From the sequence record OR608733.1: DNA of 64,000 nucleotides, one strand, 5' to 3'. Shown in pieces: positions 32,018-49,943 of the stretch (positions are counted from its first letter, which is position 1; each line of letters begins with the position of its first letter). The position numbers were made by a program, and so were the translations under genes. The notes beneath the pieces are model-generated. The model was not told the DNA's origin. It saw nothing but the letters and a program-made list of their open reading frames with translations, and searched no databases.

Positions 32018-33358
<1,341 letters not shown>

Positions 33359-33366
33359 TTAATCCT

Positions 33367-33370
33367 CATA
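33367..33370 (-). promoter_or_regulatory. Candidate late promoter (TATG) fused to the SD
   Basis: Minus strand TATG-AGGATTAATTC-ATG; a transcript starting at the G would begin with GAGGA. Confidence 0.45.
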
Positions 33371-33533
33371 ATTAGAGCGCGATGGGTTTCCATCTATAAA
33401 ATCAGTCTGTTCTAGTTGTGTTAAAATAAAAAGTCTGGTATTATGAGCTTTACGTAATACCCTTGTAACAGTCTATTGATAGAAATGCCAATACTGGCTT
33501 TTATGGGTAGGCATAGTACTAACAGAGGTCATC

Positions 33534-33824
33534 ATGCTCGGTTTGACTATTAAAGCCTTGCTCTTCGTTTGGCCATTCCTTAAGAGGGCTATCTTTGGTG
33601 ATAGAACTATTAAGGAAGTGTTGCTGGAAAACAAACACGTCACGGCGATGTTGATCCTAGTCGTAATATTACTAGGTACCTTATTCATAGTGACTAGTGA
33701 GTTGAAGTCAGTTAAAGCAAGCAACTGGGCCGTTAAAGCCGAAATGGATCGACTCAAGAAAATGACGCCTGAGAAGGCTGAAATGCTTGAGCGCCGCCGT
33801 CGTTTAAATGACTTGCTAAAGTAA
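33534..33824 (+). CDS. Small membrane protein, i-spanin-like or holin-like (96 aa)
   Basis: GAGG RBS; TM segment MLILVVILLGTLFIV followed by a charged helical C-terminus. Confidence 0.65.
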   Translation: MLGLTIKALLFVWPFLKRAIFGDRTIKEVLLENKHVTAMLILVVILLGTLFIVTSELKSVKASNWAVKAEMDRLKKMTPEKAEMLERRRRLNDLLK

Positions 33825-33844
33825 GTACCAAATTGGTGGATCAC

Positions 33845-34246
33845 ATGTCAAGAAAGTTCTTTCTAATACTCCTACCACTTATAAGTGGCTGTGTTTATAC
33901 GCCACATGAGTACCACACGCACAACACGACTGTGGTCCAATATGAACACTCCTCTTCTACAGATGATCATACATCTGTTGTTACAACTAAAGAAGAGGTA
34001 ATACAAAAAGTTCTGCCTACACCTAAAAAATATAGTAAGGATACTAGTAAGAAGTGTATGGTTTTCGAACTACCAAGAAAGAAACCGGTACCGCCAACAC
34101 CGATTATTACAGAGTTTATAGAAACTCCGGAACAAATCGATATCTTGTTGACTGACTATATAAAAGAATTAAAGTCACATATTGTATCTGAGCGCGCTAA
34201 AATTGAGCAAGCATATGAAGAATGGCGTGCAAAGTGTGATGAGTAA
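33845..34246 (+). CDS. Lipoprotein, o-spanin-like (~133 aa)
   Basis: Signal MSRKFFLILLPLISG|C with lipobox; Pro-rich KKPVPPTP; C-terminal helix ending in Cys. Confidence 0.7.
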   Translation: MSRKFFLILLPLISGCVYTPHEYHTHNTTVVQYEHSSSTDDHTSVVTTKEEVIQKVLPTPKKYSKDTSKKCMVFELPRKKPVPPTPIITEFIETPEQIDILLTDYIKELKSHIVSERAKIEQAYEEWRAKCDE

Positions 34247-34301
34247 TTTACTTGCTAGAATTATTATCTAGTTTAGTAATCGATCACATGAGGAAACAAT
34301 A

Positions 34302-35750
34302 ATGGCAGACGGTATGGTTTTATACACTGACGGATCATTCCGACAGGGTAAAGCTGGTTGGGGTATTCATGGTTATACCTATGAAAATGTTGCAATGAAA
34401 TCTAAAGCAGCCACCAAACAGCAACCAACAGCTAAGGGATACTTAGATGTAGGTGCAGATGAGACATGCACTGTTTTAAATTATATTGATGCATTTGGTA
34501 GTGTAACTAATAACCCTACTAATAATACAGGTGAGCTAACCGCTGCAATTGAGGCTTTCAAAATAGCTCATGAAGCAGATGCTCCTAGACTAACGATGCT
34601 CATGGATAGTGAATACGTTAGAAAAGGTATGACCGCATATTTACCCAAATGGATTAAGTCTAATTGGATTAAATCAGACGGCACGCCGGTAGCAAACCAG
34701 GACCTATGGAAACAGATGGTCGAACTAAAAGCTAAATGGGAAGAAACTAATAAACCATTAAGCATCCAATGGGTCCGTGGACATAACGGAGACATTGGTA
34801 ATGAAAAAGCTGATGCTAACGCTAAGCTTGGTTCGGGACAGAATAATGATAAGCCAGTGATGGTTTCGGTTAAAGGCGAGGAAATTAACAAACTTAAAAA
34901 ACAAGTTGTTAATCCACTTATCCTCGAAAGTAGGTTACTCTTCGCCATTAACTCTGGAGAAGAACCAGATGGGTTCTATTACACCTATAACTTAGGTCGT
35001 ATGCATAACTATGGTCATAAACCAAAAGACACTGCTAAAGATAAATTAGCTAAAGCTGATTTAATTTTAGGGCGTCGTATCTCTGAAGCAACCTTCAGTG
35101 TATATAAGGCAAATGAACCAGATGAGTATCTCCAGTTACTAATTAATATGCATACAGAAGCACTGGGTACTGAAAATCCAGAACTGGGTATCATCAATTT
35201 GGCAAACGCATATCGTGCAACCATTCGACAGAAAATTGAATCCATGGGGCTACCTGCTCTAGTCGTATGGAAAGATATCAATGTTTTGTCGACGCCAACA
35301 GATGAACTCATTAGTCGGACTCTTAATCCACCACGTATGGCAAATGATGCTGTAGCTACATTTAATGTTATGCGCAGTCGTCTTGAAGATTACTTGGCTG
35401 GTAAACTTGGAGAGTCGGTTGGTATTATTGATATTACCGAGCACTTCTTCGAGGAAGTCGCAAAGGGTAAGAAAGTTGGCTATCAACTACTTAAGACGAT
35501 TACATCTAATACAGGCTTTGTAGAAGTTCCGATCACATTTAAAGATCGTAAGATAAAATTAAAGCTTGTATTAAATATCGATATTCCAAGTAGAAACCAA
35601 TTAGCTCGTATTGGAGCTAATAAAGTTAAAATGGAAATTCTTGTAGTAGCTGAAGGCCCATATTCTTATTCATATTCAATTGTGTTCGTGACGGATGATG
35701 GTTCAGCTATCTATCAATCACCCTATACACAATTTATTCTCCCAAAATAG
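34302..35750 (+). CDS. rnhA: Ribonuclease HI with large C-terminal extension (482 aa)
   Basis: YTDGS, NNTGELTA, MDSEYV and HNGDIGNEKAD give the D-E-D-D tetrad; GAGGA RBS; synteny with phiKZ gp155. Confidence 0.88.
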   Translation: MADGMVLYTDGSFRQGKAGWGIHGYTYENVAMKSKAATKQQPTAKGYLDVGADETCTVLNYIDAFGSVTNNPTNNTGELTAAIEAFKIAHEADAPRLTMLMDSEYVRKGMTAYLPKWIKSNWIKSDGTPVANQDLWKQMVELKAKWEETNKPLSIQWVRGHNGDIGNEKADANAKLGSGQNNDKPVMVSVKGEEINKLKKQVVNPLILESRLLFAINSGEEPDGFYYTYNLGRMHNYGHKPKDTAKDKLAKADLILGRRISEATFSVYKANEPDEYLQLLINMHTEALGTENPELGIINLANAYRATIRQKIESMGLPALVVWKDINVLSTPTDELISRTLNPPRMANDAVATFNVMRSRLEDYLAGKLGESVGIIDITEHFFEEVAKGKKVGYQLLKTITSNTGFVEVPITFKDRKIKLKLVLNIDIPSRNQLARIGANKVKMEILVVAEGPYSYSYSIVFVTDDGSAIYQSPYTQFILPK

Positions 35751-35760
35751 TGGGTATTCC

Positions 35761-36180
35761 ATGAACCTTATTAGCAGATTCAAAAAGTCGGTTAAGAATG
35801 GTTTCAGGGCAATTTGGATTAAGCTCTGGGACTATGCTGATCCCGAACTAAAGCGGATGTGCGTCATGGCGTCACTGTACTCCGTTATAGTACAGTGTAA
35901 GACAAATGAGTGTGAAAAGATCTCTCATTTGAATTCTAACATGAAACTAGTACGCGATGAAGCTGCCTTACGACTCCCAATTCATTATGGGCCGTACGTA
36001 TGGAAAGGCGTGATAGCAATCGATAAGATTGATAAAGCAGATCTAACCACTGATCAATTTTTCATGAGGCTTATTCGTAAGACTCCGTGTTGGATGAAAT
36101 ATGCTGATGATGCAACTTTTTTAAAGGATTTGAAAACCCTCTTTAAATTAAGTTTACATGAGAAGTGTATTCCAAATTGA
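35761..36180 (+). CDS. Hypothetical protein, ~139 aa
   Basis: Open frame; ATG 35761 chosen after the RNase H stop (track start 35695). Confidence 0.65.
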   Translation: MNLISRFKKSVKNGFRAIWIKLWDYADPELKRMCVMASLYSVIVQCKTNECEKISHLNSNMKLVRDEAALRLPIHYGPYVWKGVIAIDKIDKADLTTDQFFMRLIRKTPCWMKYADDATFLKDLKTLFKLSLHEKCIPN

Positions 36181-36189
36181 TTGGTACGA

Positions 36190-36223
36190 CATAATGCCCT
36201 CTCCTTTTGGGAGAGGGCTTATG
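36190..36223. terminator. Conserved palindromic element / bidirectional terminator, copy 5
   Basis: CATAAT-GCCCTCTCC-ttttg-GGAGAGGGC-TTATG between convergent genes. Confidence 0.75.
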
Positions 36224-47359: not shown

Positions 47360-48200
<841 letters not shown>

Positions 48201-48203
48201 TAC

Positions 48204-48737
48204 TTAACTTTCTAGATAACGGATTTGACCATTTTCTAGATAACGTGCTGCGCCATTCTCTAATAGCCGGATAGTATCTGATGTATCATCAATACGTTGA
48301 ATTAGTATATTACATTCGCCATAGTAAGCATAACTACTCGACATAGCTACTATCGTGTATGGAACAACATCCGTAGTTGCATTGATTGGTGTTGTATCAA
48401 ATGAAACATCATCTGGTCCAAGCTTCCAACCCCGTGAACGGTTGATTTCTTCAGCAATTGCTTTAGGTGTTAAAGTACCAACTATCTTAAGGATAGATCC
48501 TTCACCAATAGCTCGTGGATCAGCAAAATCTAACCGACGGTAAGTTAACATGTACTTAATGTCAGTAGTAATGTCGATCATTTCAATAAATGTACGTCCA
48601 GGCTCAATCGTGGTTGGACTAAAAAACATATCTTCAAATGTAACTGTTTCTGGTTTGAAGTTTATTTTTAAATCATCCCGCGCAAGTTTTACTAGCGCGT
48701 CCCTCGATGCCATGTCATACGGAAAGATATCCTGCAT
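48204..48737 (-). CDS. Virion-type protein (177 aa)
   Basis: GAGG RBS; similar to the N-terminal domain of 31012..31962; C-terminal RLLENG/RYLENG repeats. Confidence 0.7.
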   Translation of the reverse strand: MQDIFPYDMASRDALVKLARDDLKINFKPETVTFEDMFFSPTTIEPGRTFIEMIDITTDIKYMLTYRRLDFADPRAIGEGSILKIVGTLTPKAIAEEINRSRGWKLGPDDVSFDTTPINATTDVVPYTIVAMSSSYAYYGECNILIQRIDDTSDTIRLLENGAARYLENGQIRYLES

Positions 48738-48784
48738 GTCAAACCTCTATAGTGGTAAAATGTTTAATCCACATAGCATTATAA

Positions 48785-48809
48785 AGCCTTCCTCTTCAAG
48801 AGGAAGGCT
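48785..48809. terminator. Stem-loop terminator
   Basis: AGCCTTCCTCT-tca-AGAGGAAGGCT, a perfect 11-bp stem after the holin candidate. Confidence 0.68.
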
Positions 48810-48819
48810 ATTATAGTTT

Positions 48820-49215
48820 TTATTGCATAAGCATCTTTATTAATTCAAAGGTACCTTGCACAATAGTCTTTAACACATTGGCACTTTCTTCTGACATAGG
48901 TGCACCAGATAAAACTACCATAGTAGATACTGATGCCCCAATAAGAGTAACACCACCAGCTAATACTAATACCGCATTACGGTAAGAATCTTTAGCCTTC
49001 ACTTCAGCAATTTCCCGGCTGAGAATTTTATATTGAAGATCTGAATCAGTAATAGCATAAATTCGACTAAGTACTTCTTCACCAGTTATACTTAGATTTA
49101 TACGTTGTTCCTTTTCCAATACGCTATTTAAATAGGTACGTATCTTCTTTCCATAGTCTTTAGAAGAAGATAAAGGATTACCATCGATCTCAATCAGAAC
49201 GTCCTCTAGGGTCAT
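48820..49215 (-). CDS. Membrane protein, holin candidate (~131 aa)
   Basis: ATG 49215 after GGAG; TM segment AVLVLAGGVTLIGASVSTMVVL then an amphipathic C-terminal helix; last gene of the spanin operon. Confidence 0.55.
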   Translation of the reverse strand: MTLEDVLIEIDGNPLSSSKDYGKKIRTYLNSVLEKEQRINLSITGEEVLSRIYAITDSDLQYKILSREIAEVKAKDSYRNAVLVLAGGVTLIGASVSTMVVLSGAPMSEESANVLKTIVQGTFELIKMLMQ

Positions 49216-49552
49216 GACTATTCTCCAAATTACGTTGACGTTCGTTCCATTCACGCAATTTGTCTACTTGGATATTACATAGTCCAAGTGCATCAGTTTG
49301 TAAAAGCCAATGTTCGGTCATAAGTAAGAAACGTGCTTCATTCTCATCAGTAACCCCAACAGCTTTATATCTATCTAATGCATTGATGATCTCATTAGCT
49401 GTAGGTGGGGCTTCTACATCACAAGGGAGAAGCAAACTACTTGGGATTGCAACTGGTATTTTCACGGGCGGCGGCACAGTAGTGCTCGTACATCCGTTTA
49501 GCAATAACATTAATAGACTTATTAATGCTATCTTTTTTTGTGTCAGTTTCAT
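49190..49552 (-). CDS. o-spanin (Rz1-like outer-membrane lipoprotein, ~120 aa)
   Basis: MKLTQKKIALISLLMLLLNG|C lipobox; PPPVKIP, LLLPC and LCNIQVDKLREW patterns; overlaps the i-spanin 3' end by 116 bp in another frame. Confidence 0.8.
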   Translation of the reverse strand: MKLTQKKIALISLLMLLLNGCTSTTVPPPVKIPVAIPSSLLLPCDVEAPPTANEIINALDRYKAVGVTDENEARFLLMTEHWLLQTDALGLCNIQVDKLREWNERQRNLENSHDPRGRSD

Positions 49553-49943
49553 GTTTAATCTCAGTAGTGGTACTTTCCCCATTAGTTGTTTTAGCTTTAA
49601 CCTCAGGCCATACAGGGGGAGTATATCCACGACCTGATAAACTAATGTACTCATCAATCACCTCAGTGCGTGATTGCGCCTGCTCTTTTTGTATCTCTTT
49701 CTTTTTAGTAATTAGTTCAGCTTGAATTTTATCGGAGATACGGTCTGATTCAATCCTAACCTTTTCTGCCGCTTCATAAGATTTAATTTTTCCAATTAAA
49801 TCTGTAGAGCGAACAAGTTCCGTCTCATAACTATTTTTGTAATATATGATACCAATTAAGGCACCTATCAGAATAACTAATAGTAACCATATATGCAATG
49901 GCACACTACCAATTATTTTTCGTATACCTGCTAATAGGAACAT
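49437..49943 (-). CDS. i-spanin (Rz-like, 168 aa)
   Basis: Single N-terminal TM (IWLLLVILIGALIGIIYY), periplasmic coiled coil, two C-terminal Cys; GAGG RBS. Confidence 0.78.
   Translation of the reverse strand: MFLLAGIRKIIGSVPLHIWLLLVILIGALIGIIYYKNSYETELVRSTDLIGKIKSYEAAEKVRIESDRISDKIQAELITKKKEIQKEQAQSRTEVIDEYISLSGRGYTPPVWPEVKAKTTNGESTTTEIKHETDTKKDSINKSINVIAKRMYEHYCAAARENTSCNPK

Follow-up and report, generated by a model that had tools for sequence, protein, structure and literature searches.

Why does a phage with a proven spanin carry a second membrane protein and lipoprotein pair that is laid out like one? This question is raised by a 64,000-nucleotide (nt) stretch of sequence record OR608733.1 (hereafter the window), which derives from a phiKZ-type Pseudomonas jumbo phage; its bases 33000-36000 show at least 99% identity to 47 Phikzvirus genomes, and it is oriented opposite to RefSeq NC_004629. 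By sequence, two neighbouring open reading frames (ORFs) in it are PHIKZ156.1 and PHIKZ156 (gp156.1 and gp156). An original prediction made from the letters alone had recognized them as a possible spanin-like pair and proposed redundant or differently timed spanins, or else a separate envelope-bridging complex. The separate complex fits best among these options. With a probability of roughly 55%, we read the pair as a conserved two-gene trans-envelope module of chimalliviruses that would be spanin-like in form but distinct from, and non-redundant with, the lysis spanin. It is probably not the lysis spanin of the phage but an old, conserved and unstudied envelope module. We disfavour a spanin because the pair lacks a profile link to spanins, gp156.1 combines a short tail with a predicted cytoplasmic motif absent from known spanins, some relatives are partnerless, and the proven spanin and this pair are not redundant. 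We found no literature discussing gp156 or gp156.1, apart from a remark that they are co-transcribed with gp155 and gp154 (PMC12571901).

The other, overlapped pair at 49190-49943, which the original prediction had considered convincing, is real and corresponds to gp141/gp141.1, part of a minus-strand lysis cassette that spans 47360-49943. Manohar et al. (Sci Rep 2026) established gp141 as the inner-membrane spanin subunit (i-spanin), gp141.1 as the outer-membrane subunit (o-spanin), gp142 as the holin, gp143 as a regulator and gp144 as the endolysin, and together 141 and 141.1 fully complemented a lambda RzamRz1am lysogen (PMC12894885). Kongari et al. 2018 likewise place phiKZ and 201phi2-1 among phages with overlapped spanins (PMC6139136). 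The two pairs of the window share a general plan, in which the gene of a bitopic protein with an N-terminal transmembrane (TM) helix precedes that of a lipoprotein. Conservation in chimalliviruses and depletion of transposon insertions are likewise common to the two. In contrast, gp141 has a periplasmic coiled-coil domain of ~130 amino acids (aa) and a short N-terminus, whereas gp156.1 combines a conserved, predicted cytoplasmic head (35 aa) with a 41-aa tail. The genes for gp141/gp141.1 overlap and lie beside those for holin and endolysin, whereas those for gp156.1/gp156 are separated and belong to an RNase H operon ~15 kb away. The function of gp141/gp141.1 is proven experimentally, whereas any role of gp156.1/gp156 is putative. 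Sequence or profile similarity between the two pairs was not detected.

Transposon insertion sequencing (Tn-seq) of phiKZ by Chan et al. (PMC12676376, filtered Table S2) bears directly on redundancy. gp141 and gp141.1 each carry one weak insertion; because they are nearly insertion-free even though gp156.1/gp156 are present, the latter cannot replace them. The same table lists no insertions in 156.1, 156, 155 or 154, whereas the neighbouring gp158 has 19, and insertion densities in gp158 and gp143 predict 7-14 sites in 156.1 and 156 combined. In the unfiltered data, 156.1 accounts for 4631 reads at up to six sites, some of which must fall within the 29 nt masked at either end of the gene. Co-occurrence of the two kinds of pair points the same way. 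Ralstonia phage FLC4-11C (LC819006) encodes relatives of our pair, gp59/gp58, and ~31 kb away a cassette resembling gp140/141/141.1/142. This cassette, at 92636-91000 on the minus strand, comprises a gp140-like gene, an i-spanin-like ORF (92077-91567), an ORF for a PPPP lipoprotein (91568-91227) and a holin-like ORF with a C-terminal TM helix, and so mirrors phiKZ gp140-141-141.1-142. PhiPA3 has a separate Rz-like match at 147 kb. Since FLC4-11C carries both kinds of pair, they are not recent duplicates or simple backups; together with the PhiPA3 match, this suggests that both have been kept since before these lineages split.

The pair is also conserved across genera. Using tblastn, we found both proteins encoded side by side in 63-69 phage records, which include all Phikzvirus genomes, PhiPA3 (gp180/gp179), 201phi2-1 (gp242/gp241), Phabio, Noxifer, PS119XW, Psa21, D6 and others. 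gp156.1 is conserved from residue 1, with 53-56% identity in PhiPA3, D6 and Psa21, and matches phrog_14813 over its full length (E 1e-43). gp156 matches phrog_15897 (E 2e-64) and phrog_8165 (E 2e-6). A word-index protein search gave few relatives; for the lipoprotein we used a full-library search of 1.84 billion cluster representatives, which placed gp156 relatives in 34 clusters at 50% identity. The gene order TM protein, lipoprotein, RNase H-like protein, gp154-like protein is kept in phiKZ, PhiPA3, 201phi2-1, Phabio, Noxifer, PS119XW and FLC4-11C. It recurs in five of the six metagenomic contigs that we opened, divergent from a gp157-like virion gene where the contig reaches that far; on the sixth, of 964 bp, the lipoprotein gene lies between open frames cut by the contig ends. 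Wherever a syntenic locus has the lipoprotein, its gene adjoins that of the TM protein (12/12), and in lineages with the lipoprotein the two are separated by gaps of 2-27 nt or share a 4-nt overlap.

More distant members were reached with profiles. FLC4-11C gp59 carries the N-terminal motif of gp156.1 and matches both phrog_14813 (E 1e-5) and our hidden Markov model (HMM) of the N-terminus plus TM helix (E 4e-4), while gp58 is a lipoprotein with the three-Cys pattern of gp156 that did not reach significance by HMM. The TM protein of Xanthomonas phage Xoo-sp14 matches the N-terminus-plus-TM HMM at E 1e-13, and long-form TM proteins match phrog_14813. Salmonella phage SPN3US has a TM protein and a lipoprotein (ACQ60_gp062/gp061) at the corresponding place, and the C-terminal domain of the latter matches the gp156 HMM (E 3e-6). 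There an exoribonuclease gene separates the lipoprotein gene from the RNase H gene, and we did not identify a gp154-like gene at the locus. The SPN3US and FLC4-11C pairs resemble gp156.1/gp156 in architecture and in lying upstream of an RNase H-like gene; they differ in their TM proteins, long forms (165-171 aa) whose tails are coiled-coil and Pro-rich. All four proteins are annotated only as hypothetical.

We next turned to the architecture of each protein, using hydropathy and AlphaFold2 (AF2) models. As the original prediction had described, gp156.1 is a 96-aa protein with one strong TM segment and a charged helical tail. The membrane segment covers residues 36-54, with a mean Kyte-Doolittle value of 2.81 in the best 19-residue window. 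The AF2 model is all helical (residues 2-21, 26-32, 34-76 and 79-95); a single continuous helix, 34-76, passes through the membrane segment, and helices 57-76 and 79-95 make up the tail of ~41-42 residues. It displays the features that mark its family, namely the motif LLxxWPFLK..F followed by one TM helix, encoded upstream of a chimallivirus RNase H-like gene. Conservation is concentrated at the N-terminus, with mean pairwise identities of 76% in the first 35 residues, 33% in the membrane helix and 35% in the tail, although the C-terminal end, RRxxLxxLLK, reaches 56%. P14, F15, K17 and F21 are invariant in 13 sequences, long forms included. A net positive charge marks the N-terminal region of each of the 13 family members, whereas most tails are close to neutral; by the positive-inside rule, the N-terminus is predicted to be cytoplasmic and the tail periplasmic. 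One or two tail Cys residues in several relatives are consistent with this placement. Distant relatives outside the phiKZ clade instead have a charged helical coiled-coil tail, Pro-rich at its end in some, that at 110-130 aa matches an i-spanin in size.

For gp156, the description of a lipobox protein 20 nt downstream with a Pro-rich stretch, two further Cys and a C-terminal helix held in every part (Pro-rich stretch PRKKPVPPTP; AF2 helix 95-132). The lipobox is present in 12/12 syntenic copies. Residue +2 is Val rather than Asp, the residue that causes inner-membrane retention of E. coli lipoproteins, so nothing points to such retention. gp156 is predicted to be lipidated at Cys16 and is probably sorted to the outer membrane. 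The linker that follows is poorly conserved (16% mean pairwise identity) and is modelled without secondary structure at a predicted local distance difference test score (pLDDT) of 54-74. In contrast, residues 70-133 are modelled at a pLDDT of 95-98 as a hairpin, in which an extended Pro-rich segment runs along a 38-residue helix. gp156 thus combines the hallmarks of its family, a lipobox Cys and a C-xx-F-x-LP...P-x-P segment followed by a helix ending in Cys. Residues C16, C71, P77, P83 and C131 are invariant in 33 sequences, and C71 and C131 are 58-62 residues apart in the copies measured. Given this constant spacing, C71 and C131 probably form a disulfide that staples the hairpin, which would suggest an oxidising, periplasmic location. 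The C-terminal domain is shared with the SPN3US lipoprotein family phrog_8165, matched by 30/33 gp156 relatives. Fold searches of BFVD and PDB and profile searches of PDB sequences returned only relatives named 'Lipoprotein' or coiled-coil noise. We also considered charge complementarity between the gp156.1 tail and the gp156 helix; judged by eye, it was seen in phiKZ but not in PhiPA3, and we dropped it as an argument.

Taken together, these features allow a mechanism to be sketched. gp156.1 would insert into the inner membrane with its N-terminus inside, leaving the conserved 35-residue amphipathic motif in the cytoplasm and extending into the periplasm a short helical tail, or a long coiled coil in distant relatives. 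gp156 would be exported, lipidated at Cys16 and probably sorted to the outer membrane, where it would hang its disulfide-stapled hairpin on a flexible linker of ~55 residues. We surmise that the conserved C-terminal end of gp156.1 docks on this hairpin, that the two proteins thereby tie the inner to the outer membrane, and that the cytoplasmic motif couples the bridge to a phage or membrane partner. Binding and bridging are suggested by the layout, the shared compartment and the conserved C-terminal elements of both proteins. The module is made from an operon that also encodes the RNase H-like gp155, which is essential by antisense knock-down and reported to be needed for phage-nucleus maturation (PMC12571901). 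Candidate roles are readying the envelope for lysis, setting the time of lysis and tethering an assembly step to the membrane. A bolder version, which we hold only tentatively and think unlikely, is a spanin-derived, non-lytic and essential coupling device special to nucleus-forming phages, in which the bridge fixes or reports the state of the envelope while the WPFLK motif recruits a phage partner. Such a device could, for example, seed procapsid assembly at the membrane, or sense superinfection and delay the gp142 holin as a lysis-inhibition sensor.

Several observations weigh against a bridging module of this kind. We looked for a lipoprotein gene beside the Xoo-sp14 TM protein and beside the positional analogues in phages PCH45 and Deimos-Minion and found none; because these three lack a detected partner, a gp156.1-type protein may act alone. 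The tail of phiKZ gp156.1 is itself net +5 (+12/-7), and its topology therefore depends on the family pattern. Outer-membrane sorting of gp156 is deduced from the absence of known retention signals, which is its sole basis. In short forms such as that of phiKZ, the tail (41 aa), linker (55 aa) and helix (38 aa) together would barely reach across a periplasm of ~20-25 nm. The gap in Tn-seq insertions is explicable by polarity, since gp155 is essential and the authors of that study show polar effects. At 15 min post infection, mRNA levels in reads per kilobase per million (RPKM) are 894 for 156.1, 608 for 156, 2975 for 155 and 10697 for 154; the pair's transcripts are thus 3-17 times less abundant than those of 155/154, and they are unresponsive to knock-down of chmA or the non-virion RNA polymerase (nvRNAP), which lowers 154 and 155 mRNA but not that of 156 or 156.1. 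Lastly, a feature search of the ESM Atlas sets gp156 beside clusters of T4-type o-spanins (PF26831) with a score of 0.90 and 191 shared features, and 25/30 matches are T4-spanin clusters. We regard this placement as a lead rather than a test; gp156 may have a real relationship to spanins.

How spanin-like the pair is can be gauged against the criteria of Kongari et al. 2018 (PMC6139136). gp156.1 has an N-terminal TM helix with a predicted N-in/C-out topology; the gp156 sequence has a lipobox (LISG/C, Val at +2) free of an inner-membrane retention signal; and the lipoprotein gene directly follows that of the TM protein after a 20-nt gap. The combined periplasmic length of ~158 aa falls within the published range of 62-300 aa (PMC6139136), although the 41-aa tail of gp156.1 is too short for two coiled coils joined by a linker (CC1-linker-CC2). 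The separated two-component layout seen by the original prediction is thus upheld as a layout. A family relationship to spanins was not found: neither gp156.1, gp156 nor the 33 relatives matched a spanin PHROG or a spanin entry in a Pfam copy that lacked PF26831, and hhalign and HMM comparisons with T4 PseT.2/PseT.3, gp141, gp141.1 and the FLC4 o-spanin-like protein were negative. Because spanin families are extremely diverse, the missing link is weak evidence. Neither is the pair located among lysis genes; it lies ~15 kb from gp141-144 as the first two genes of the gp155/gp154 unit. Such a location is not obligatory, as T4 spanin genes lie apart from those for holin and endolysin.

Known systems offer partial parallels. 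T4 PseT.3/PseT.2 (phrog_739/phrog_812; PF26831) resemble gp156.1/gp156 in being short subunits (117 + 99 aa) encoded by separated genes, away from holin and endolysin and among genes for nucleic-acid enzymes. T4-type o-spanins also have a variable linker and two conserved Cys, as gp156 does (PMC6139136). Direct comparison gave no support for kinship: in an hhalign alignment of gp156 with PseT.2 only the lipobox aligns, at a probability of 10%; nothing aligned between gp156.1 and PseT.3; and 0/33 gp156 relatives matched phrog_812. Lambda Rz/Rz1 likewise pair a class II inner-membrane subunit with an outer-membrane lipoprotein bearing a Pro-rich element; their Cys residues form periplasmic disulfides, and the subunits are thought to join via their C-termini (PMC6139136). 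In contrast to our pair, Rz1 is unstructured, 40 aa long and encoded within Rz, Rz has two long coiled coils, and both proteins lack a helical hairpin domain as well as a conserved motif on the cytoplasmic side. As a separate observation on gene placement, T4 pseT.2/pseT.3 (locus L031:5133-5782) are flanked by alc and pseT and are remote from genes e and t.

Could the pair nonetheless be a genuine second two-component spanin, fusing or disrupting the outer membrane at lysis as an auxiliary to gp141/gp141.1 or on a different schedule? Its layout is that of a separated two-component spanin, distant relatives have i-spanin-sized coiled-coil tails (110-130 aa, some with Pro-rich ends), and the proven T4 spanin genes pseT.3/pseT.2 are similarly short and remote from lysis genes. 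The ESM Atlas placement of gp156 by PF26831 clusters (0.90) and the SLT-domain protein in the FLC4-11C pair operon lean the same way. So does the Deimos-Minion gene at the pair's position, which is the best Rz-like (phrog_214) match of its genome, although phrog_214 is unspecific and also matches 7/14 control genomes. We nevertheless consider a second spanin distinctly unlikely. gp141/gp141.1 alone fully complement lambda spanin nulls and, being nearly without insertions, are not replaceable by gp156.1/156; both kinds of pair are retained together in distant lineages; the strongest conservation falls in a predicted cytoplasmic N-terminus that has no part in spanin function; the phiKZ tail has no room for CC1-linker-CC2; and profile similarity to PseT.2/PseT.3, gp141, gp141.1 or any spanin PHROG is lacking. 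The proposal of redundant spanins is disfavoured on the same grounds, that is, a proven and insertion-poor gp141/141.1, co-occurrence in FLC4-11C, cytoplasmic conservation and the absence of a spanin profile.

A different objection is that there is no complex at all, gp156.1 acting by itself through its cytoplasmic motif (for example as a holin- or antiholin-like lysis timer, a modulator of cell division or the cell wall, or a membrane anchor for capsid assembly) and gp156 being an unrelated periplasmic lipoprotein that is the next gene by chance. The partnerless Xoo-sp14 relative and PCH45/Deimos-Minion analogues speak for it, as do the unequal rates of divergence between the same phages (50-66% identity for the TM protein vs 25-37% for the lipoprotein) and the position of the gp156.1 gene back to back with head genes gp157-162. 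The predicted 35-aa cytoplasmic head, single TM helix and periplasmic tail of gp156.1 also recall the topology of the class III holin T of T4. Against this stand the strict adjacency of the two genes (2-27 nt gaps or a 4-nt overlap) in every lineage with the lipoprotein, the single compartment that the conserved C-terminal elements of both proteins would share, and the presence of a proven holin, gp142, and regulator, gp143; we therefore see independent action as rather unlikely. Superinfection exclusion or receptor masking, in which a membrane protein and a lipoprotein block later phages in the manner of T4 Imm/Sp, T5 Llp or phi80 Cor, is very improbable. Small envelope proteins, lipoproteins included, are typical of exclusion systems, and 156.1/156 mRNA is present at 15 min and nvRNAP-independent. 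Faint matches to the Cor PHROG, found in 2/33 relatives, are not significant (E 0.07). Exclusion genes are usually accessory and variable, whereas this module is fixed in position in a core operon of Pseudomonas, Ralstonia and Salmonella chimalliviruses that use different receptors. Insertions are depleted in single-phage culture, where exclusion brings no benefit. The suggestion of superinfection exclusion in the original prediction thus fares poorly against wide conservation and insertion depletion, and its suggestion of a role in building the infection vesicle is unlikely given that neither protein is among the virion proteins identified by mass spectrometry. RefSeq tags from electrospray ionization tandem mass spectrometry (ESI-MS/MS) mark gp153, gp157, gp160, gp162 and gp163 as virion proteins but not gp156.1/gp156, for which the only evidence tag is 'RNA sequence analysis'.

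A trans-envelope module in phiKZ would matter for several reasons. phiKZ is the model nucleus-forming jumbo phage; the definition of its lysis cassette dates only from 2026, and mapping of its essential genes is under way. gp156.1/gp156 are conserved across genera, share an operon with an essential replication gene and look "essential" by Tn-seq. Should this reflect a true requirement and not polarity, chimalliviruses would need a complex across the envelope for a purpose other than outer-membrane rupture, which would be new cell biology; if the pair is instead a working spanin, phiKZ would possess two spanins that are not interchangeable. Automated tools for spanin detection will flag gp156.1/gp156, and annotators should know that the proven spanin lies elsewhere. 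The features of the locus are collected in Table 1.

Table 1 Features of the gp156.1/gp156 locus and of the comparison pair, in window coordinates.
Feature	Position	Strand	Details
Conserved upstream block TTTATGGGTAGG, contains TATG	33500..33511	+	~25-35 nt 5' of the gp156.1 start codon
gp156.1 (PHIKZ156.1), predicted bitopic inner-membrane protein	33534..33824	+	ATG 33534, 96 aa, phrog_14813
N-terminal 35 residues of gp156.1, amphipathic motif LLxxWPFLKRAxFGxR..EV.L.N	33534..33638	+	Predicted cytoplasmic
Transmembrane helix of gp156.1 (~residues 36-55)	33639..33698	+	Kyte-Doolittle, AF2
Predicted periplasmic tail of gp156.1 (residues 56-96)	33699..33821	+	Two short helices broken at Pro79
gp156 (PHIKZ156), predicted lipoprotein	33845..34246	+	ATG 33845, 133 aa, phrog_15897
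Predicted gp156 signal peptide, lipobox LISG/C	33845..33892	+	Cys16 codon 33890-33892
Ser/Thr-rich linker of mature gp156 (residues 17-69)	33893..34051	+	Modelled disordered
gp156 C-terminal domain (residues 70-133), C71-xx-F-x-LP...P-x-P segment on helix 95-132, ends C131	34052..34243	+	AF2
gp155, RNase H-like, next gene of the gp156.1/gp156 transcription unit	34302..35750	+	Context
gp154, final gene of the gp156.1/gp156/gp155 unit	35761..36180	+	Context
gp141.1, phiKZ o-spanin, lipobox LNGC	49190..49552	-	120 codons; phrog_456, Rz-like spanin, E 9e-12
gp141, phiKZ i-spanin	49437..49943	-	phrog_7584, Rz-like spanin, E 2e-68; comparison only

Translation and transcription signals surround the pair. 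A Shine-Dalgarno sequence, AGAGG, lies 5-9 nt 5' of the gp156.1 start codon, and another, GGTGGA, precedes gp156 at 33835-33840. Across aligned gp157/gp156.1 intergenic regions from eight phages, the block GGCTTTTATGGGTAGGC is conserved; in the window it reads TTTATGGGTAGG and may be a phage promoter element, although as a motif it is not enriched there (5 matches vs 3.3 expected). In the same divergent intergenic region, a similar outward-facing block, TTTATAGATGGA, lies on the minus strand at 33389-33400, opposite TTTATGGGTAGG on the plus strand. Both blocks are conserved among relatives and could form a divergent promoter pair, with the motif not enriched elsewhere in the window. Public RNA runs from phiKZ-infected cells, available as contigs without depth, gave further detail on the operon. 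One Nanopore contig begins at 33527, which is no proof of a transcript start. Other Nanopore cDNA contigs have 5'-adapter ends at 35150 and 35372, within the 3' portion of gp155, and poly-T 3' ends at 36188-36191, immediately beyond the gp154 stop codon, suggesting that gp154 transcripts start internally and that a 3' end is shared. The 3.6-fold excess of gp154 over gp155 mRNA fits such internal starts.

Annotation of the pair and its relatives is uneven. Several Pharokka-style annotations replace gp156.1 by two ORFs, one of 58 aa that starts at Met39 and a spurious one of 56 aa on the other strand, as in phage 6B (OR608733) at locus L001:4474-4825, equivalent to window positions 33473-33824. 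Because such entries start at Met39, their protein records lack the conserved N-terminal motif; by tblastn, the 96-aa reading is the conserved one. In phage SEGD1 (KU726251, locus L011:680-1738) neither gene of the pair is annotated, and that of the lipoprotein has a 1-nt frameshift relative to SPN3US. In SPN3US itself (locus L034:2601-3605), the annotated TM-protein start, ATG at L034:2646, is probably 15 codons too far downstream; a GTG at L034:2601 would add the N-terminus FKLLPFLQMLW.

Positional analogues were harder to recognize. Our HMMs miss PCH45 gp68, Deimos-Minion gp151 and the SPN3US TM protein, even after one iteration, and the likeness of their N-termini (LLRLIPYLYSFIKE, FFWSLPFIKK and FKLLPFLQML, respectively) was judged by eye only. 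The predicted PCH45 spanin gp54 was considered as the RNase H neighbour and ruled out, the neighbour being gp68. Deimos-Minion gp151, from an Erwinia phage (locus L012:1980-2387), is a TM and coiled-coil protein encoded upstream of the RNase H gene; its annotated 114-aa form matches phrog_739, the T4 i-spanin family (E 3e-4), and reading from a GTG 21 codons 5' of the annotated ATG adds FFWSLPFIKK. Finally, FLC4-11C gp55 (locus L013:4622-5080), encoded after the gp154-like gene in the operon of the pair, is an SLT-domain transglycosylase with an N-terminal signal-like sequence.

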